From NCBI RefSeq assembly GCF_001194135.2, contig NC_068983.1:52239501-52273512 (forward strand): 34,012 nt of DNA, in the 5' to 3' direction. Shown in pieces: positions 2,253-17,140 of the stretch. The notes below the pieces were generated by a model that was not told the origin of the DNA, did not search any database, and saw only the letters and a list, made by a program, of their open reading frames with translations. Numbering within the stretch: position 1 is the stretch's first letter; each line of letters starts with the position of its first letter. A program made the translations under genes and the position numbers. This DNA comes from Octopus bimaculoides. Lineage: Eukaryota.

Positions 2253-3160
2253 CTACAATTCAGATCTAAGATTAATTTTCGGGCTGTAGTTCGAAATTGA
2301 AATACCTTCTATTCTCATTTTCAAATATCTGTTTCTTTAGCTTCAATAGAAACTTGATTTTCTTTAGTGTGGCATTCCCCAAGCTGTTCTTTCTTATTTC
2401 CTCACAGACGAAACAATAGCATAGAGATTTCTCTAGTCTTTCTGCGAACTTGTCTAGTAGAATTCCGATCTAGAATTAATTACATTCGCTGCTTAAGATT
2501 TTATATACCATGTAGGATGGCAGATATATATTTTCATCTTTGATCAAGTAGTTGGGCAATACGCATTATGTGTTGTTTTGTCTTGGGCTGATTTTAGTTA
2601 GCACCCTACTCTGGGGAGCCAGAGAGTGTACTATCCATATATTCAATCCTTCCTCATGGATCACACTGCGGATTACAACAGTTGCATTTTATGTTCGTCA
2701 CAATGTAGCAGTCTCAAGAAGAGAAAAAAACGTGTGATCCTTAGAAGTGTAGGTTTTGTTAGGTGGTCTGACGATGTCCTTGCGTTTGGTAAAAGTAAAA
2801 GAGCATGGATAGCCATTCGCCATCAGTAGTTTTTGGAATTACGTGATGTTGGAGGTTTTGCTTTCAGCTTAGCTGCCTTTACTTCGTGTTCACTCCTAAT
2901 GAAGGCCGTCTTAGCTCTGATGGGCACAGGTCGATTATAACATATAAGCATACATCTGCATGTCGCTTTTATCTCCGTAAATGTTAGAGGAGTTGGATCC
3001 GTTCTCTATAAATGTGAATCAAAAATCAAGAAGAAATAAGGAACTTTTGTTATTGGGCTGCTTCACTTCAAACTCTATATGTTTATCGATATTGTTGCAC
3101 ATATTATATATTTGAACATCATCCACGAACTCCCGGCTGTATGTGTAACTGTACAATTCC
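2253..3160 (-). mobile_element. Decayed Penelope-like retroelement (RT C-terminus plus GIY-YIG endonuclease)
   Basis: Manual minus-strand translation with stops and frameshifts: FVDD (3129-3118), NNIDKHIEFEVKQPNNKSSLFLLD, PIRAKTAFIRSE, KLLMANGYP, VYKILSSECN*F*IG (2508-2464), TRQVRRKTRE, KMRIEGISISNYSPKINLRSEL* (stop 2255-2253). Order and spacing fit PLE RT followed by GIY-YIG. Confidence 0.8.
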
Positions 3161-4602
3161 TCTACTCCTTTCTTCTAAAAACATTCAGTAATTATTCTTT
3201 TCGATTACCATATTACTAATTATATTGATAATTTAAGTAAATTTAATTCTATTCTTTAGGTACACCCTGTCTTTTCCAATGTCAGCATTTGCCGCTGCGT
3301 ACAATAATGATACATCGTAGTAACTTAATTAATATTAATGTAATTTTATTGTAGCATTTTCGCTGCTATAGTTTTCAGTGGTAACTTATTCAGTATCTGC
3401 TTTTATTAGTAGTGAATATACGTTGCCTCTTTTTTTATATTTCAATAAATAAATTTTCTTCCTATTTTTCTAATATTATGTTTTCAAATATATACAGACT
3501 CATCCATTTTTCTCAGAATGAATTTAGATCTAAATTTTATCGAAGTATCTCAAACATTTTGCAATGAACCGACAAGATCGTTGATCGTATTATCAATCAG
3601 GAATCGAAATGTTTAACGCCATATAAAGCTAATCTAATTCTCATATCTATGTATGGAAAAAATATAATTCCTTTCTATGTCTAATATATGAAGTTACTAT
3701 AGAATCAGCAATAGAAATAATCATGTCCTTATAAGGACAGGAACTACGCATAAAAATAATAGTTTGGTTTTTGTTTTCATAAATTCTAGAAGTCTTATAT
3801 CGGTGAGTTTCTGACTTGGTTAGTTATGGAACTTTCTCTGTTGTTGCACTTGTTATGCTGTTGCTCGTTTCTTAGTCCTCGTTGTTACTACTTCATATAG
3901 TTTCATACATAATTAGCACAGCGATCGTACCGCATTCAAAATCAAATGGAGCCTATTTGGATAAGTTAGCAAAATATTTATACTACTTACAATAAACATT
4001 GCCAAAACGTCACATATTTCGTAAGAAGCCGTATAGAATATTTGGTGCTATAATGAAATACTCTTGATGTAAGAAATAATATTTTAAGTAGTTACATGAG
4101 AGAATACACTGTGAATAGCTGTATATCTTACAGTAATATGCATTTCTCCCAAGTGACATGGCATTATTATTTGACAATATTCTCCATTGATCGAGGTTTC
4201 ACTATTAATCTATGTGATACTTATTTCATTGCTTTACGAGTTAAGTTTTCTTATTAGGTATCTTACATCTACGAAACTGCAGTGGTCGTTTCTTTTGTCG
4301 AAGTAATATAAGTTTGCATTTCAACCATCCTCTGTCGATTGTCTTCATCTCTTTTCATATATTTGTAACTATAAGCCTTATTTTCTTTTCCATATTATCA
4401 AGAAACACGCCGGGCTTCTTCAAATAATATTCGAGATATTTCTGCGACAATTCCGTAGTTACAATTTCTTTTAGTTACAGATCTTTTTTATGCTTTTATG
4501 CCAAGAATGTTATTTAAGGAATACCTAAGATTGCAACTTCTCATTTCTTTCCTATTGGGGCGATATTTTTCGTTGGTATACTGAAATCGATATTCCATCA
4601 AT

Positions 4603-5016
4603 AGGAGTGGCTGTGTGGTAAGTAGCTAGCTTACCAACCACATGGTCCCGGGTCAGTCCCACTGCGCGGCATCTTGGGCAAGTGTCTTCTACTATAGCCT
4701 CGGGCCGACCAAAGCCTTGTGAGTGGATTTGGTAGACGGAAACTGAAAGAAGCCCGTCGTATATATGTATATATATATATGTATGTGTGTGTGTATGTTT
4801 GTATGTGTGTGTTTGTCCCCCCAACATCGCTTGACAACCGATGCTGGTGTGTTTATGTCCCCGTAACTTAGCGATTCGGCAAAAGAGATCGATAGAATAA
4901 GTACTAGGCTTTTAAAGAATAAGTCCTGGGGTCGATTTGCTCGACTAAAAGGCGGTGCTCCAGCATGGCCACAGTAAAAAGACTGAAACAAGTAAAAGAG
5001 TAAAAGAGTAAAAGAG
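4603..5016 (+). mobile_element. tRNA-derived composite SINE family C, full length
   Basis: Head aggagtggctgtgtggtaag...cttgggcaagtgtcttctac, internal (TA)/(TG) tract, tail gctccagcatggcc...gactgaaacaag(taaaagag)n; homologous to 13382-13769 and 32013-32543. Confidence 0.9.
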
Positions 5017-5222
5017 AATGTTGAAATAAAATTCACTTGTCCTCAAGGAAACTTTGAAGGAAATGCATGCTCAAGGATTCCCAGTACGTTTTACACTCTG
5101 TAAACTGATCGGCTAATGACAACATTTGTACAGGCGTTACCCATTTAAAGGTTACCCATGTAATTTGCTAAATTACATGTGAATGGCCACATGTATACAT
5201 GCAAATGTGTGTGTATATATAT

Positions 5223-6089: not shown

Positions 6090-6430
6090 AGGTCGTGGAC
6101 GTGGTGGTTGTGGCGGCGGCGCTGACGGTGGTAGTAATGAATGTTGCAATGGCTTTGGTGGTGATGAAGGGGAAGAAAGTAGAAGATGACGACGGTGACG
6201 ATAATAATGATGTTGACGATGATGAAAGTAGTGGTGGAGGAGATGGTAGTGACTTGGTGGTGGAAGGAACGCTACTGATGATGAAAATGTTAACGATATA
6301 GTATTATATAAATATAATATAAATTAATAATAATAATATAACAATATAATATAAATTTTAGATAGTATATTATTGTTATGATGATTATAATAATAATAAT
6401 AATAATATAATGGTAATAATAATAATGATG
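6090..6430. repeat. Decayed (GGT)/(GAT) and (AAT) trinucleotide low-complexity tract
   Basis: Direct reading; explains the V/D-rich ORF 5987-6301. Confidence 0.8.
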
Positions 6431-6433
6431 ATA

Positions 6434-6717
6434 CAGTTCTATATTTAAGAGATGAGAAATTATGTACATTATTTACATTATTTATGCCCGTGGGCATATA
6501 GTGTAGTGGCTAAGAGCGCGGGCTACTAACCACAAGATTCCGAGGTCGATTCCAGGCAGTGACTTGAATAATAATAATAATAAAAACATCGAAAAATACC
6601 TTAGGAATGAGAACCCAGGTTCGAAATTTCCCCACGACACCTGAAGGTTGGAGGGTATATCAGCCGAAACGTTGTGTTAACAACAAACAAGATGAGGACA
6701 AATATCCGTCAATTATA
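6434..6717 (+). mobile_element. Family H element (tRNA-like head plus hammerhead motif), solo copy with inverted 3' tail
   Basis: Body 6486-6717 is homologous to 8630-8886. 6434-6478 is the reverse complement of the family 3' tail. Flanked by direct repeat AATAATGATGATA (6421-6433, 6718-6730). Confidence 0.85.
6637..6677 (+). ncRNA. Minimal type-I hammerhead ribozyme motif, core damaged
   Basis: ACAC-CTGAA[GAA deleted relative to the 8.8 kb copy]-GGTTG gagggtatat CAGCC-GAAAC-GTT-GTGT. Helix I ACAC/GTGT, helix II 5 bp with one GU, palindromic ACGT in place of helix III. Confidence 0.6.
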
Positions 6718-7898
6718 AATAATGATGATATAATACAATAATAATATAACATAAATCTCTAATATATCACTAATACAATAATGATAATAATAGTATAATA
6801 TATTATAATATAACATGAATCTATAATGACAAACAGCACAAAACCCCAGTAGACACAATATCTTCAATCAACAACCTCACGAAATTGTATACCATGCGAC
6901 GTCTATAATAATGATGAGGAAGAGGAGGGGGAGAATAAGAAGAAGGAGAAGATTAAGAATAATAAGAAGAAGAAAAAAAAGAATATAATTATATAATATA
7001 ATATAGAGATAATGTAATATAAAACAATGTATCACTTCATAGGAGGAACTTTAGAATTTTCCTAGAATTCATTCGTAAATTAATCATGAGCAAGATTAAA
7101 TATTTGATAATAATTTCTCTTTGCAGCGTAAATTTCCTCTCTATGTTATTGTTCGTAATAGAATATCAAAGACTTATTTTCCAAAACATACAACATCATC
7201 GAATGGTAACTCTGTTAGGAGAAGCAGTTTCAGCCAAACACGTTTAAGCACGCTATTTTTCGCTGCTTGTAAGGTGTAAGAAAGATTTATATCCTATGCT
7301 TTGAACGCATTATAACGCCTAGTACTATGGACATATGAAGATATAAATGAGTGAAGCGGTTAGCACATGTGAAATTCTACGTAGCATGTATTTAGCACCA
7401 AATTTTATACTAATGTCAGATAAGATGATGGAACTGGCAGAAAATTTATCAAAACCTTCAAAGTCCAGAGAGTGTAAGGAGAAATTTCTTAAGTGATAGC
7501 AGCATTTTATTTGGTCTAATGAAAACACGATAGAGTTTAATAGCGACGTAACTTGTAATTCTATTTATGTGATTGAAACAGTCCAATTCACAAGTCAGCT
7601 GCTAATTGGTCAATTCTTTGATTTAGTTTATTGTTTTGATGAATTAAGAAATAAAATAAGCATAATGCAATATTGAATGTGAAAAATAAATGGTGAGAAA
7701 TTATATTAATGAGGCAAATTTCAAATCATGCTTTTCGTGTTATAATTTTAATGTTTAGCACTACAGCTACAAGTCACTCATCAGAAATCTCATAGGAATA
7801 ACTGAATTCGTTGTGCGAAAATAAGCATGAACTGCATGGGGGTGTAAATGTAATAGTTGATCTACTGATAATATACATCCATCTTAACTGCATATATG

Positions 7899-7917
7899 AT
7901 AATAATAATAATAATAA

Positions 7918-7948
<31 letters not shown>

Positions 7949-7980
7949 AAGAAGAAGAAGAAGAAGAAGAAGAAGAAGAA

Positions 7981-8012
<32 letters not shown>

Positions 8013-8016
8013 AGAA
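7899..8016. repeat. Compound (AAT)n(GAA)n microsatellite
   Basis: Direct reading; source of the poly-K/F/L ORFs. Confidence 0.95.
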
Positions 8017-8266
8017 AGAGTTTAAACAAAGAGCTGAGGAGGAGAGAAAAGAAGACCTTCTTGAAATGAAAATGCATGGACAGTTTGAAAGGAATGAACA
8101 AGATGTTAAGGATAATACAGCATCGTGGGCATGGCTTGAGTGAGGTGATTTGAAGCGTTCCACCGAAAGCCTGATCATTGCTGCACAGGACCAGGCTGAT
8201 GCTACCAATTCAGTGAAGCATAACATCTATAAAACTTCTGACACTCAGAAATGCAGAGCCTGTGGA
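8017..8266 (+). mobile_element. R4/Dong-like non-LTR retrotransposon internal fragment (post-RT region to start of zinc knuckle)
   Basis: One frame with a single stop: KMHGQFER..SWAWLE*GDLKRSTESLIIAAQDQA..TN..K..I....KCRACG, matching the R4-clade pattern HGQF..W.WL..G.LK.ETE..I.AAQDQA followed by CxxC. Confidence 0.8.
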
Positions 8267-8274
8267 TGGGAGAG

Positions 8275-8606
8275 CTGCTCATATCTCCTTCGGGTAAAAC
8301 CACCAATAAATGAGAATATGACCAAAGACTGCGTGTACTCCATCCCAAAATAAGGGTAGACGAACATAATAAACCTGTGACATGAGGAAACATTGATAAA
8401 TCGGGTATAGCTGATCTGGTATGGAAAAATGGTGACCACCTCCCCCTGTGGGATGAAGAGACAGAGAACACCACTGGAAAATACGAAAACTAAAAGAAGC
8501 AGCACATATGCTAGGACACAACAACCTCCTAAGCAGACCGGGTGCAGATATGAACAGCATATGGGAACCGGTATTAAGAAAGGATAGAAAAATATTAGAT
8601 TTATAA
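8275..8606 (+). mobile_element. Penelope-like element GIY-YIG endonuclease 3' fragment
   Basis: Across two frameshifts/deletions: VKPPINENMTKDCVYSIP / KIRVDEH..KSGIADLVWKNGDHLPLWDE / DREHHWKIRKLKEAAHMLGHNNLLSRPGADMNSIWEPVLRKDRKILDL* (stop 8604-8606). The CxC..YxG segment is deleted. Confidence 0.78.
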
Positions 8607-8629
8607 GCTCTAAAATTCACTCCATAATT

Positions 8630-8886
8630 GCCCACGGGCATATGGCGTAGTGGTTAAGAGCGCGGGATACTTACCCCTAGATTTCGAGTATGATTCTACG
8701 CAGTGACCTGAACAATTATAATAAAAACATCGAAAAATACCTTAGGAATGAGAACCCAGGTTCGAAATTTCCCCAAGACACCTGAAGAAGGATGGGGGGT
8801 GTATATTAGACGAAACGTTACGTTAACAACAAACAAGATGAGGTCAATATATATACAATGTACATAATTCCTCATCTCTTAAATAC
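8630..8886 (+). mobile_element. Family H element (tRNA-like head plus hammerhead motif) directly behind the PLE ORF end
   Basis: A-box TGGCGTAGTGG (8643-8653); shared aacatcgaaaaataccttaggaatgagaacccaggttcgaaatttcccc with the 6.5 kb copy; CTGAAGA...GAAACGTT; tail tgtacataattcctcatctcttaaata. Confidence 0.85.
8778..8824 (+). ncRNA. Minimal type-I hammerhead motif, core intact but helices degenerate
   Basis: ACAC-CTGAAGA-A-GGATG...TAGAC-GAAAC-GTT-ACGT; helix II and the helix I 3' strand are mutated relative to the 6.6 kb copy. Confidence 0.55.
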
Positions 8887-9139
8887 AGGTGGAGGTTGAG
8901 TTAACCTGTGATCACAACCGTTAGTCGAATAGGTATCCCGTAAAATATTCTGGTTGTGCACACAAAGCAAAAGAAGACACCTCTACGGATATTTAACGCC
9001 TGCTGTAATGAACTGGCATTTACCCATCACCTGTTATTATTCATTTGTTTATATGTGTGTGCATATATGTATATAGTTATACTTGGGGATGGTCATCTGT
9101 TGCCAAATAAACACATGCACTATTTATTTGATCTTCACT

Positions 9140-9200: not shown

Positions 9201-10810
9201 AGTAATAGTTTATTTGTCAGAATTCTCTAGTCACAGATTCTGTAACCTCTATCAAATTTCTGTTTCTGGTGTCTGGCCTGGACACACAAGCCACAGAAAG
9301 TCGCTGAATAGGTCACAGAATGTGTACCGAAAGAATTCTGAGAAATAAACTAAAGTTGAGGTAAAGATCAAATAATTAGGATGTGTATTTAATTGACAAA
9401 AGATGGCCGTCCTCAAATATAACAATATATGTTTGAACACACGATTCCACATCAAGAATTTACAAAACCAACGCACAAACGTATATATATATATATATAT
9501 ATATATGCATTCACTAACAGAAAATGCTTGATATATTCGTCTATTCCCGTTGAAATACATGCTATACATATCCAAATTTTCAGTGTCATATACATAAAAC
9601 ACACTTATACAATAATGGGGGCTGTATTAAATGAAATTATAATGTTGGTGATTGGATAAATAACTTTTCGTTTTAATTGTATGACCATATTTCAAGCTAT
9701 AGCAAATCCAATATGCAGGAAATAAGATAATATTAGGCAGTTTCTGGATGAACATTATGCAATAAATATCGATTGAAGTCTCTGCAAATTCATCAATTCG
9801 GATTTATTGCTGACATTTGCAAATGTATGCAATAGAATATTATGCTTCTCGAAAAGAAGTCACACATTCAGAAACCTTTGAAGCAGGTGGACACATTTTT
9901 ATAATTGAACCATAGATTGTACAATTTTACAATCGATTTATGTTTCTAGACAATGGTAAGTGTCTCACACAGAGGTATAACACCGTATGTTAACCTTTTG
10001 TAGATTTGCTCAAAATTTTGGAGTAGGTGAGTGCTTGCAGTTATTCAAGTCGATATATTGTTGGCGTAATGTCCAGCAGTCAACTTACTGAAAGAGCTAA
10101 TTTCTAAAATAATGAATTAGCTATACTTGTGCACATTTGAAAGATAGTCATAACATTTAAAAATACAATCAGCTATTCATCAACGTTATGGTTAACCAAA
10201 ATTCCATACCTTGTCATTAACGATCGGCACTTAACTTAATAAGGTGGGTCTATGAATATGATATTGGAGGCATTAATATATTATGTGCTGTAGAATTAAA
10301 TGGGTGAAGTCACGCGATTTCTAATTGTGAGATCAGAATAGGTAAATGAGTGATATTTTATATCATGTGTGTTAGACACCCAATCATATTTCTATTTACA
10401 ATTGATTATTGGTATTTCAATGCGGGTGAGAATATTTTTTGTTGTATTATTCATTTGCTGCTTCATTATTTTGATCATTAAGATAGTCGGTTGTGTTTCA
10501 ATATCCTACAGATTCTAATATATAAGAGCGTTTGTATGTATGTATGTTTATCCCATATATATATATATCGTTGTTAAACTGTCGTATGTCCAAATGCGGG
10601 TTTTTCTTACAATATTTATTTTTGCTTGCAATGCCAAGATATCAAAATTTGTTAAGTCGAGTACAACGGTCTTGCTATGGAACGGTGAAACTATTTTTTC
10701 GTTTCCTGGAAAAAAAAACAACACTTTGTGCATACGACAGTTTTGCATAATAGCAACCAAATATATCTCATGATTTTGTGTTGATGACAAACATCAGGTT
10801 TTCGCTAATC

Positions 10811-13381: not shown

Positions 13382-13769
13382 ATTCTTTTATTCTTTTACT
13401 TGTTTCAGTCACTTGATTGCAGTCGTGCTGGAGCGCAGCCTTAATCGAACAAATCGATCCCCGGACTTAATCTTTGTAAGCCTAGTAATTATTGTATTAA
13501 TCTCTTTTGCCGAACATAAACACACTTAACATCGGTTGTCAAGCGACGGTGGGGGCACAGACGCAAATACACAAACATATCCACAAATATATGCACAAAT
13601 ATATATATATACGACGAGCTTCTTTCAGTTACGTACACAAAATCTATTCACAAGTCTTTGGTGGGCCGGAGGCTAAAGTAGGAGAAACTTGACCAAGGTG
13701 CCACGCAGTAGGACTGAACCGGGAACCATATGGTTGAGAAGCTACCTTCTTACCCCACACCAACGCCTG
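13382..13769 (-). mobile_element. SINE family C, near full length, diverged
   Basis: Reverse complement of tail (ttcttttacttgtttcagtc) through head (ggtgccacgcagtaggactgaaccggg...cttaccccacac). Confidence 0.88.
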
Positions 13770-15770: not shown

Positions 15771-16086
15771 CGTGACCTCGGTGGAATTTGAACTCAGAAC
15801 GTAAAGACAGACGAAATACCGCTAAGCATTTCACCGACCGTGCTAAAGTTTCTTATTTCTTAATTGCCCGCAATGGGCTAAACATAGAGGGGACAAACAA
15901 GGACAGTTAAAGATATTAAGTCGATTACATCGACCCCAGTGCGTAAATGATACTTAATTTATCGGCCCCGAAAGAATGAAAGGCAAAGTCGACTTTAGCG
16001 GAATTTGAACTCAGAACGTAAAGACAGACGAAATACCGCTAAGCCTTTCGCCCGGCGTGCTAACGTTTCTGCCAGCTCGCCGCCTT
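15771..16086 (-). mobile_element. SINE A' (alternative tail) joined to a partial SINE A
   Basis: A' 15853-16086 with tail cttatttc..ttgccc.caa.gggctaaacatagaggggacaaac; partial A 15771-15852. Confidence 0.85.
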
Positions 16087-16979: not shown

Positions 16980-17140
16980 TTTTCCCGCTCCGTCTTACTT
17001 TTCTGTTGGACTTTCCTCTGTTTCTGAAGAAGAGCTTTGCTCGAAATGTAAAAACCACCTTTCTTTCCTTCCTTGAGCATCTACTAATACTTTATATGTA
17101 CCGTGTCCTCGCTTTGTTGATTTATGTTTGTTATTCGTTT
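16980..17140 (+). mobile_element. Older family B relative with canonical hammerhead core
   Basis: GTTT-CTGAAGA-A-GAGC ttt GCTC-GAAAT-GTA-AAAAC (17020-17055); downstream ttccttgagcatctactaatac resembles family B ttcccgagcgtcaaactaatac. Confidence 0.65.

Follow-up and report, generated by a model that had tools for sequence, protein, structure and literature searches.

The question raised by this locus is whether a short unit that combines a tRNA-like head, a hammerhead and a fixed tail, here called family H, is an independent SINE or a part of the Penelope-like element (PLE) next to which one of its copies lies. SINEs usually have a LINE as partner, and RepeatMasker-style classifications are not known to include a tRNA/Penelope class. 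The window, i.e., the whole stretch of 34,012 nucleotides analysed here (Octopus bimaculoides, contig NC_068983.1, positions 52,239,501 to 52,273,512), had been reported in a preliminary description to hold two related copies of H, the second with its head 23 nt after the stop codon of a PLE. Both points were borne out. The copies at 6486-6717 and 8630-8888 are ~85% identical (BLAST of the window against itself: 6485-6705 with 8629-8852, 84.6% over 227 columns, E 7e-67), and the PLE stop codon lies at 8604-8606. The same self-comparison found no third copy of family H in the window. The family consensus matches copy 1 with 94% identity over 249 nt, and this copy also has an internal (AAT)n stretch (Table 1).

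Table 1. Positions of family H features and adjoining sequences in the window
Feature	Position	Strand	Basis or remark
H copy 1, ORF-less, head to short tail	6486..6717	+	consensus match, alignments
Palindrome in H copy 1	6483-6498		
A-box-like TAGTGTAGTGG in H copy 1	6499-6509		
B-box-like segment in H copy 1	6542-6553		
GTTCGAA box in H copy 1	about 6618-6626		
Hammerhead remnant in H copy 1	6637-6677		3 nt of CUGANGA deleted
Left target-site duplication of copy 1, AATAATGATGATA	6421..6433		identical 13-mer at 6718-6730
Right target-site duplication of copy 1	6718..6730		perfect 13-bp match to 6421-6433
Inverted, 5'-truncated fragment of H long tail	6434..6478	-	reverse complement of ...ATGTACATAATTCCTCATCTCTTAAATATAGAACTG
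H copy 2, terminal module of 5'-truncated PLE	8630..8888	+	long tail to 8888
Exact A box in H copy 2	8643-8653		
Degenerate B box in H copy 2	about 8684-8695		
Hammerhead remnant in H copy 2	8778-8823		
PLE 3'UTR remainder GCTCTAAAATTCACTCCATAATT	8607..8629	+	bridges ORF and H head
PLE ORF 3' remnant (linker end and GIY-YIG-type endonuclease)	8270..8606	+	frameshifts and in-frame stops
Fragment with LINE-like C-terminal sequence (...ESLIIAAQDQA...CRACG), outside H	8010..8269	+	target of copy 2 insertion

The family carries PLE-type insertion marks, namely target-site duplications of variable length (13 and 11 bp), a tail extension of ~30 nt at one end only, and an inverted truncated copy upstream. 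The inverted tail fragment (40-45 nt) is 88% identical over 40 nt to the reverse complement of 8849-8888. Neither this fragment nor the perfect 13-bp duplication around copy 1 had been noticed in the preliminary description. The inverted-fragment arrangement recurs in O. vulgaris locus L001 (9971-10048 and 11804-11844), and further inverted pieces occur in L005 (351-444) and, as a head-to-head pair, in L007. On either side of copy 2 stand GTGGATGG (8262-8269) and GTGGAGG (8889-8895), which probably represent a target-site duplication, though an imperfect one. As described in PMC8557442, PLE insertions show an inverted 5'-truncated copy and a one-sided tail of 30-40 bp, and template-jump products, e.g., tandem and inverted pieces, are common among them. 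Copy 1 (6434-6717) and copy 2 (8270-8888) are separate PLE-style insertions, and the latter is a 5'-truncated PLE that keeps the last ~340 nt of its ORF. The idea that both copies are the two pseudo-LTRs of one decayed PLE was rejected, as copy 1 has its own perfect target-site duplication; no RT-like sequence was found in 6731-8009. A further proposal takes 6434-8888 as one composite, a DNA transposon or foldback with 40-nt terminal inverted repeats, or takes the motifs as products of chance. Segments 6439-6478 and 8849-8888 are indeed inverted repeats, and the A box alone is not significant. However, the perfect duplication encloses copy 1 while none flanks 6434/8888, the same units occur singly at other loci, and hammerhead matches are absent from all 50 shuffles of the window and first five loci, so that such a composite or coincidence is scarcely credible.

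The H unit is continuous with a PLE at its upstream end. Window positions 8346-8869 align unbroken to O. vulgaris L001 10114-10641 (82.5% over 537 nt), and this alignment crosses the ORF end, the 3'UTR and H in one run. The junction of stop codon, 3'UTR and head is identical in three Octopus copies (window copy 2, L001_A and L006), and the GCTCTAAAATTCACTCCATAATT 3'UTR, conserved in L001_A and L006, remains recognisable in L005, L004, L003 and L002. The ORF remnant at 8270-8606 shares 81-85% amino-acid identity with P0001 and P0002 from O. vulgaris, and the RT-bearing PLE ORFs in L002 and L005 are counterparts that run continuously through the remnant region. The Pfam GIY-YIG model gave no match on the endonuclease fragments; the GIY-YIG-type assignment was made from motifs and from homologs named GIY-YIG by JGI. 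Four other PLE families have the same block order after the ORF. In the L003/L002, L004 and L005 families, which come from other organisms, the order is ORF end, GGTTTATAA, hairpin, A box, B box, GTTCGAA, hammerhead and GATGAGGACAA tail, and in L002-L005 this homologous order comes with an RT upstream. The A/B boxes are degenerate in L007, and the module is absent from L008, a distant PLE in which the hammerhead follows ~70 nt after the stop codon. A 5' repeat was seen in L005 in partial form only, from the hammerhead loop onward and adjoining the inverted fragment. The LINE-like piece at 8010-8269, presumably a LINE by its motif, is left out of the repeat unit common to the window, L001 and L006 and had no Pfam match. 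The 3' part and the whole H unit are common to a PLE and not to a LINE.

The adjacency to a PLE is not peculiar to this locus, since it is also found in L001, in L006 and in the homologous families. The preliminary description had left two alternatives, a PLE pseudo-LTR with a Pol III-type promoter that sheds short copies and an independent SINE class that parasitises PLEs. The contiguity of head and 3'UTR and the homologous position of the head favour the first, and the second fits the junction data poorly. Under the second, H would be a tRNA-derived SINE with a borrowed PLE tail, and the ORF-linked copies would be chimeras formed by template jumps from SINE RNA to PLE mRNA. Such jumps are common in PLE insertions, as noted above (PMC8557442), and unclassified SINEs are very abundant in octopus genomes (PMC13282606). 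Nonetheless, this explanation is quite improbable, because the three Octopus copies share an identical junction and because several diverged PLE families of other organisms have the head at the homologous position, with conserved blocks on both sides. A conserved junction and a homologous position are what descent within the PLE predicts, not repeated jumps. Judged from these alignments, H did not come to lie next to the PLE as a free SINE.

The hammerhead consensus that had been combined from the two damaged window copies is confirmed by intact Octopus hammerheads in O. vulgaris L001 (11920, minus strand) and O. sinensis L009 (10035). The intact form is ACAC-CTGA(T/A)GA-A-GGCTG-loop-CAGCC-GAAAC-GTT-GTGT. 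Both ribozymes in the window are damaged as reported, copy 1 by the loss of 3 nt of CUGANGA and copy 2 by mismatches in helix I and helix II. Searches with Rfam, at gathering thresholds and at E<=10, found neither a hammerhead nor a tRNA in the window, L001, L005, L006 or a 111-nt slice. The Rfam hammerhead models evidently do not cover helix-III-less PLE variants, and we therefore wrote a descriptor of our own and controlled it with shuffles. In the window and 10 loci together it matched 9 instances, two of which are one orthologous copy in two species; the window and first five loci, with 5 real instances, yielded 0 matches in 50 shuffles. The features of minimal type-I hammerheads (CUGANGA...GAAA, an extra nucleotide between 9 and 10.1, G10.1-C11.1 and a palindromic 15.2-16.2) are present in L001_B and L009_D, and also in the related families L005 and L008. 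One pair of helix II covaries between families, being UA in four and CG in three. L004 and L007 have natural G12A variants, which are presumably inactive. C15.2 and G16.2 adjoin directly, which leaves helix III no way to close inside a single molecule; by this geometry, the predicted ribozyme forms helix III only as a dimer. MFE and cofold predictions were uninformative because alternative pairings win, and PLE mini-hammerheads cleave poorly in vitro (PMC4209133).

The A and B boxes of the head are incomplete in the window and better kept in some other copies. The A box TGGCGTAGTGG noted earlier at 8643-8653 is the only exact TRGCNNAGTGG in the window, but it is weak by itself because at least one match also appears in 18 of 100 shuffles. 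The B-box-like gaggtcgattcc is present at 6542-6553 as described. It differs by one deletion from GGTTCGANNCC, a consensus that is not matched in either window copy even with one mismatch allowed. In better-preserved copies, RGTTCRANNCC sits 43 nt downstream of an exact A box; the exact A-box core and GTTCRANNCC occur at this distance in L006, L009_D and L010_D, and 0.04 occurrences of the combined A/B-box pattern are expected in L009. The GTTCRA core is enriched in H modules, and no T4 run was found inside H. ARAGORN at default settings detected no tRNA in any H copy (matches appeared only at thresholds cut to 70% or lower and were not trusted), and the Rfam tRNA model did not match the H head, even in 110-nt slices. 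The head consensus aligned to an approximate tRNA-Ile-like query with a score of 42, compared to a maximum of 30 in 300 shuffles; this alignment is a lead only. In the Octopus and L005 families the unit begins exactly at a hairpin of 5-6 bp, the sequences of which differ.

The ORF-less copies share a start zone close to these boxes. Three independent head-bearing copies without an ORF (window copy 1, L001_C and L009_D, the last with an ortholog in L010) start within ~8 nt of one another, 13-21 nt upstream of the A box, and none of them starts in the 3'UTR between stop codon and head. The ORF-less unit, known from a very small sample, is ~270-320 bp long, non-coding and dispersed, with target-site duplications. 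Our survey of ~100 kb of independent Octopus DNA yielded four ORF-less insertions and one unselected PLE-linked insertion; L010 is orthologous to L009 and thus adds no independent copies. Six-frame H peptides had one match only in the protein collection, an O. sinensis protein, and the L009/L010 locus was reached via isoform X1 of the O. sinensis protein and the O. vulgaris ortholog. In the O. sinensis mRNA model, an H copy supplies the start codon of one gene isoform, so that Pol II transcripts include H. An exact 25-mer of H had 0 matches in JGI metagenome contigs. Elsewhere, H copies are single or form inverted pairs, and those in the window lie 2.1 kb apart with separate target-site duplications; no head-to-tail tandem repeats with hammerheads were found in the window or the loci.

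These copies could be severely 5'-truncated or template-switched PLEs, in which the tRNA piece is a passenger or has another PLE role and there is no SINE-like life. Truncation at the 5' end is usual for PLEs, and solo PLE mini-hammerheads have been attributed to truncated PLEs (PMC4209133). It also occurs here: L001_B and L009_E begin inside or after (AAT)n and are thus truncated inside H, and copy 2, L001_A and L006 are truncated PLEs. The rejection of the head by tRNA detectors is in line with this explanation as well. However, simple truncation is unlikely to account for a ~8-nt start zone shared by three ORF-less copies, located where a type 2 Pol III start would lie, for the lack of any start in the 3'UTR between stop codon and head, or for the A/B boxes kept at canonical spacing in better-preserved copies.

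Alternatively, H could be a discrete RNA unit whose 5' end comes from the Pol II start of the PLE, from RNA processing, or from an RT stop or switch at the 5' hairpin. The promoter of the element is known to sit in PLE pseudo-LTRs (PMC6765202), the hairpin falls exactly at the unit start in two sets of families, and the O. sinensis mRNA model includes H. Such an origin is nevertheless rather unlikely, since copies of an RNA from a Pol II start lose the upstream promoter, the start is followed downstream, at tRNA-like distances, by the A and B boxes, and an RNase P-type cut at tRNA +1 would fall ~9 nt downstream of the ends seen.

The explanation to which we give slightly better than even chances is that family H is the terminal module (3'UTR/pseudo-LTR region) of an Octopus PLE and that the ORF-less units come from short RNAs initiated at the head. 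The putative module consists, in order, of a short hairpin, a tRNA-derived A/B-box segment, (AAT)n, a GTTCGAA box, a PLE-type minimal type-I hammerhead and a hairpin-forming tail. Both window copies would have arisen by PLE-style target-primed reverse transcription in separate events. The ORF-less units would stem from short RNAs starting at the head, with the internal A/B-box promoter (Pol III type 2) as their most likely source, and with an internal promoter each copy would keep its own. These RNAs would extend past the hammerhead as far as the PLE 3' end and be copied in trans by the PLE RT/endonuclease, so that H would act like a SINE that sits within the autonomous element serving as its partner. 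The hammerhead, presumably inherited from the PLE, would cut between GUU and G only upon the pairing of two copies, be it in trans or within tandem RNAs. The common start sites, the box spacing and the lack of a T4 run suggest that short RNAs may arise from a Pol III-type promoter in the pseudo-LTR. The rejection of the head by ARAGORN and the Rfam tRNA model was counted against this, as was the state of the boxes in the window, where neither B box fits and copy 1 also lacks an exact A box. The tiny size of the survey and the 5' truncation of L001_B and L009_E count against it as well. Being part of the PLE itself, the head may also serve the PLE in some other way. The broader proposal, which we hold at somewhat less than an even chance on sequence evidence, is that a PLE lineage present in Octopus and in other ENA assemblies incorporated an internal Pol III promoter of tRNA origin into its pseudo-LTR and thereby turned every terminal repeat into a SINE that propagates itself via PLE enzymes.

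From retrozymes and Sm-alpha there are hints that short hammerhead RNAs can be mobilised by PLE enzymes. If the A/B-box module is a working Pol III promoter, it would offer a tangible path by which an autonomous PLE gives rise to a SINE-like parasite built from its own terminal part, parallel to the tRNA- and 5S-bearing LTRs of TRIMp3. H would then be the first SINE family with a Penelope-like partner and nested in that partner, and would connect SINEs of the Sm-alpha type with retrozymes and PLEs. In octopus genomes, ~11.6% of the DNA consists of SINEs, and the majority of those active recently lack a classification (PMC13282606); if the proposal is true, H could explain part of this large unclassified load, and a working promoter would aid octopus genome annotation. 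The SINE-like reading predicts a sharp spike of 5' ends within ~10 nt upstream of GCCCGTGGGC, and without a functional promoter only ordinary truncated PLE ends would be left of the finding.

Family H is a twist on known elements, not a new class. The earlier suggestion that a tRNA-plus-hammerhead PLE-SINE was not a standard described class was overstated, as the SINE-like Sm-alpha and Sj-alpha of Schistosoma, with a hammerhead, a tRNA-derived part and transcription by Pol III, were already known (Ferbeyre 1998, Laha 2000; PMC2770079, PMC6765202). Similar to PLE pseudo-LTRs with minimal type-I hammerheads (Cervera & de la Pena 2014, PMC4209133; Lunse et al. 2017, as cited there, also deals with these ribozymes), H follows an RT/GIY-YIG-type ORF, has the extra nucleotide between 9 and 10.1 and G10.1-C11.1, and is scattered in the genome as solo copies. 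With no helix III loop and a palindromic ACGU, a PLE-type ribozyme must pair as a dimer. H also shares inverted truncated copies and one-sided tail extensions with PLE insertions (PMC8557442). In contrast to PLE pseudo-LTRs, H has an insert of ~250-450 nt between ORF stop and hammerhead, which holds the putatively tRNA-derived A/B-box segment and repeated GTTCGAA boxes and is lacking in the distant PLE L008, and its ORF-less form has a discrete 5' end at the A/B-box segment.

According to their descriptions (PMC2770079, PMC6765202), Sm-alpha and Sj-alpha are, like H, short non-coding retroposons, with a type-I hammerhead and a tRNA-derived Pol III promoter, which in H is putative; the likeness is one of architecture. 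In the literature Sm-alpha has a canonical hammerhead and the elements often form tandem arrays, whereas H has a PLE mini-hammerhead and is dispersed. No sequence shared with an autonomous partner is reported for them, whereas H forms a physical segment of the PLE presumed to be its partner. Metazoan non-LTR retrozymes (PMC7229834; preprint 10.64898/2026.07.22.740005) resemble H as non-autonomous, hammerhead-bearing derivatives of PLE pseudo-LTRs that are proposed to use PLE enzymes. However, retrozymes are tandem repeats of ~170-400 bp with a hammerhead in each and are expressed as circular RNAs, and a tRNA or Pol III module is not reported for them in these sources, whereas H copies are single and dispersed. 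TRIMp3 elements (Cassandra, Helenus, Ajax; PMC10886601), as H is proposed to do, embed a promoter stemming from a gene for a small RNA in the terminal repeat of a retroelement; their LTR promoters are 5S- or tRNA-derived Pol III promoters thought to come from SINE insertion into the repeat. Unlike H, they belong to the non-autonomous LTR elements, lack a ribozyme, have target-site duplications of 4-5 bp, and contain both a primer-binding site and a polypurine tract. Their promoter is not reported in an autonomous partner, whereas the H module is carried by the autonomous PLE itself.

The H repeat is very probably the terminal module of a Penelope-like element (PLE), and both window copies were very probably made by a PLE. 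BLAST of the window against itself aligned 6485-6705 with 8629-8852 at 84.6% identity (227 columns) and found no third H copy in the 34 kb. N runs (assembly gaps) at ~11.4-12.4, 19.5-19.7, 23.4-24.0, and 32.26-32.34 kb, adjoining TA/CA microsatellites, indicate that the window derives from a gapped scaffold, and these gaps could conceal more H copies. Translated over frameshifts, the degenerate ORF that precedes copy 2 matched four proteins; identity reached 81-85% for the top two, of which one is from Octopus vulgaris. Our comparison loci were an O. vulgaris chromosome locus (L001), a metagenome contig with octopus-like DNA (L006), a gene locus of O. sinensis (L009) with the orthologous O. 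vulgaris locus (L010), and ENA assemblies from organisms other than Octopus (L002-L005, L007, L008), which have nothing in common with Octopus apart from the PLE. Window 8346-8869 aligned without a break to L001 10114-10641 (82.5% over 537 nt) across the ORF end, stop codon, 23-nt linker, and H, and L006 has the same ORF-linker-H junction, reaching further into the ORF. Window copy 2 and the L001 and L006 copies are independent insertions, as their flanks differ. The homologous ORF of L002 and L005 runs upstream into reverse-transcriptase motifs (protein P0005: RVT_1, E 1e-11). The recurring junction and these upstream motifs bear out the link to Penelope proposed in the preliminary description.

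In a multi-family alignment (Octopus, L003/L002, L004, L005), conserved blocks follow the ORF in an identical order (see table). In the L007 PLE the A/B boxes are decayed, and the distant PLE of L008 is without the A/B-box module, its hammerhead lying ~70 nt past the stop. Given the unbroken junction in the Octopus copies and the block order kept across PLE families, the tRNA-like head, as judged from these alignments, was inherited within this PLE lineage and forms an integral part of it. On the same grounds, it is not a SINE that chanced to land beside a PLE. Exactly where the H unit begins (window 6483-6498; L005 3038-3051) stands a hairpin of 5-7 bp and a 2-nt loop; Octopus (TATGCCC-GT-GGGCATA) and L005 (TGTCCA-GG-TGGACA) have different sequences here, suggesting that the structure is conserved. 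The window and L001 also have in common at least two further families of short interspersed repeats (75-93% identity), with no similarity to H.

Features of the H insertions, conserved blocks downstream of the PLE ORF, and other shared repeat families
Feature	Position	Structure or sequence	Context
Copy 1 insertion	6434-6717	inverted long-tail fragment, ~7-nt junction, H head to short tail	inside 13-bp target-site duplication
Copy 2 insertion	8270-8888	5'-truncated PLE, long tail	flanks GTGGATGG/GTGGAGG
Block 1		ATATGGGAACC	end of ORF
Block 2		A-rich stretch	
Block 3		GGTTTATAA	
Block 4		short hairpin	
Block 5		A box, CATGGCGNAGTGG	
Block 6		B box, RGTTCRANNCC	
Block 7		variable region	
Block 8		GTTCGAA box	
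Block 9		hammerhead	
Block 10		AAAGATGAGGACAA + tail	
Other repeat families	4605-5017, 13384-13759, 15854-16084, 30751-30942, 32014-32538		window
Other repeat families	1542-1956, 2901-3131		L001

The insertion structures resemble those of known PLEs. A perfect direct repeat, AATAATGATGATA, brackets copy 1 at 6421-6433 and 6718-6730, and the final ~45 nt of the copy 2 tail recur in inverted orientation at 6434-6478; the preliminary description had overlooked both. L001_A, an H copy in the O. vulgaris locus, has the same layout (inverted tail piece, then direct copy, short tail) within an 11-bp duplication. Copy 2 split a fragment with LINE-like C-terminal sequence (8010-8269), and in L005 and L007 inverted copies adjoin direct copies. 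Published drawings of PLE insertions show, beside the upstream repeat, a copy that is inverted and 5'-truncated, together with a tail of 30-40 bp at a single end (PMC8557442), and the structures in the window, L001_A, L005, and L007 match this inverted truncated copy and one-sided tail. Since each window copy has its own PLE-type structure, the two represent separate PLE-type events, and their reading as two repeats of one element was rejected. Several of the insertions are located in AAT-type microsatellites. The split fragment reads ...GDLKRSTESLIIAAQDQA...KCRACG after a long (AAG)n run (7920-8010); its C-terminal motif marks it as a putative LINE piece, and Pfam returned zero matches for 8010-8269.

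The H hammerhead carries the hallmarks of PLE ribozymes. Rfam detected a hammerhead in no H copy, and because it misses even intact ones, we wrote our own descriptor (CUGANGA, an optional extra nucleotide, helix II of ≥4 bp, GAAA, a 15.2-16.2 pair with a 0-6 nt loop, UH, helix I of ≥3 bp). It found nine instances in the window and 10 loci, including pseudo-LTR copies of L005 and L008, and none in 50 shuffles of the window and first five loci, which hold 5 real instances. The H copies L001_B and L009_D, with the L010 ortholog, read ACAC CUGA(U/A)GA A GGCUG-loop-CAGCC GAAAC GUU GUGU, so the combined consensus proposed earlier exists as genomic sequence. Both window ribozymes are damaged, as claimed: 3 nt of CUGANGA are missing from copy 1, and helices I and II of copy 2 contain mismatches. 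Covariation is modest (paired cells 77% vs 19-57% for slid partners), with one helix II pair alternating between U-A (four sequences) and C-G (three). Features that Cervera and de la Pena name as hallmarks of PLE mini-hammerheads (PMC4209133) are present: a nucleotide intervenes between 9 and 10.1, G10.1 pairs with C11.1, and 15.2-16.2 is palindromic. Zero nucleotides separate C15.2 from G16.2, and helix III thus requires two molecules or two copies to form.

Other hammerhead-like sequences were also encountered. L005 95-138 (minus), which lies outside the PLE pseudo-LTR, holds a second, different hammerhead, ACTACA CTGATGA GGCGT-AATA-ACGCC GAAAC-ACGT-GTC TGTAGT; its helix I has 6 bp and its 4-nt loop 3 is palindromic, and it could represent a retrozyme-like element or a further PLE family. 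The descriptor match at window 17018-17056 (plus), CTGTTT CTGAAGA A GAGC-TTT-GCTC GAAA TG TA AAAACC, has a helix II of just 4 bp and a context unlike H, and could reflect chance or the remains of a different PLE family. G12 is changed to A (AAAAC for GAAAC) in the hammerheads of L004 ~8176-8225, L007 ~9620-9670, and the L007 inverted twin; the change is expected to abolish catalysis, yet it occurs in two PLE families of one organism.

The head contains Pol III-like promoter motifs. Reading the sequence placed the motifs of the preliminary description where it had located them. The B-box consensus GGTTCGANNCC was found in neither window copy at ≤1 mismatch. The A box TGGCGTAGTGG (8643-8653) is the sole exact TRGCNNAGTGG in the window and by itself weak evidence, as at least one match arises in 18% of shuffles. 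Better-preserved copies combine an exact A box with RGTTCRANNCC 43 nt downstream, the spacing seen in tRNA genes; 0.04 such combinations are expected in L009. In all families, H modules contain the B-box core GTTCRA 2-5 times each (p≤0.01 in most). In L005 (module 3117-3330) the cores form three tandem ~21-nt units, AAGTTCCCRAGTTCGAAAAGT; repeated cores could represent several sites of TFIIIC type or a different kind of protein-binding array. No T4 run occurs inside H. The head consensus aligned with a tRNA-Ile-like sequence from D loop to T loop at a score of 42 (maximum 30 in 300 shuffles), a lead only.

A small census (~100 kb of independent Octopus DNA) contained four insertions lacking the ORF and a single unselected one linked to it, window copy 2. 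The head is present in three of the four ORF-less insertions (window copy 1, L001_C, L009_D), and these start within ~8 nt of each other, at GCCCGTGGGC or slightly before it and 13-21 nt ahead of the A box, with none of the three 5' ends in the 3'UTR; such clustering, in three copies, would not be explained by random 5' truncation. On balance, we lean toward a SINE-like behavior predicted from these motifs and ends, in which the pseudo-LTR would hold an internal Pol III-type promoter launching short RNAs that extend to the PLE 3' end and would be copied in trans. Against this, ARAGORN and the Rfam tRNA model rejected every head, the truncation of two copies, L001_B and L009_E, falls within H, and the sample is small.

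One H copy lies within an octopus gene. At L009 10002-10110 (O. sinensis CM016884.1), its GTTCGAA box, hammerhead, and tail start encode the start, MRTQVRNFPKTPEEGWRVYQPKRCVNNK..., of predicted protein LOC115224785 isoform X2; this cysteine-rich membrane-protein gene model thus owes its start codon and initial coding sequence to the insertion, which is common to O. sinensis and O. vulgaris (orthologous copy in L010).

Much of this architecture is already known. In a literature search (Repbase and Dfam not covered), we found no report of hammerheads in octopus SINEs or of a tRNA-derived A/B-box module in a PLE pseudo-LTR. A recent O. vulgaris annotation gives 11.6% SINEs, the recently active ones mostly unclassified (PMC13282606). 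Mini-hammerheads of PLE pseudo-LTRs and their dimer dependence have been described, as have thousands of solo PLE mini-hammerheads "probably related to truncated PLEs" (PMC4209133). In schistosomes, Sm-alpha and Sj-alpha are SINE-like elements that derive from a tRNA, bear a hammerhead, and are apparently transcribed by Pol III (PMC2770079, PMC6765202). Animal retrozymes are proposed pseudo-LTR derivatives dependent on PLEs (PMC7229834; preprint 10.64898/2026.07.22.740005), and TRIMp3 elements are defined by tRNA- or 5S-derived Pol III promoters within LTRs (PMC10886601). Given these four precedents, H is a variation on described elements.
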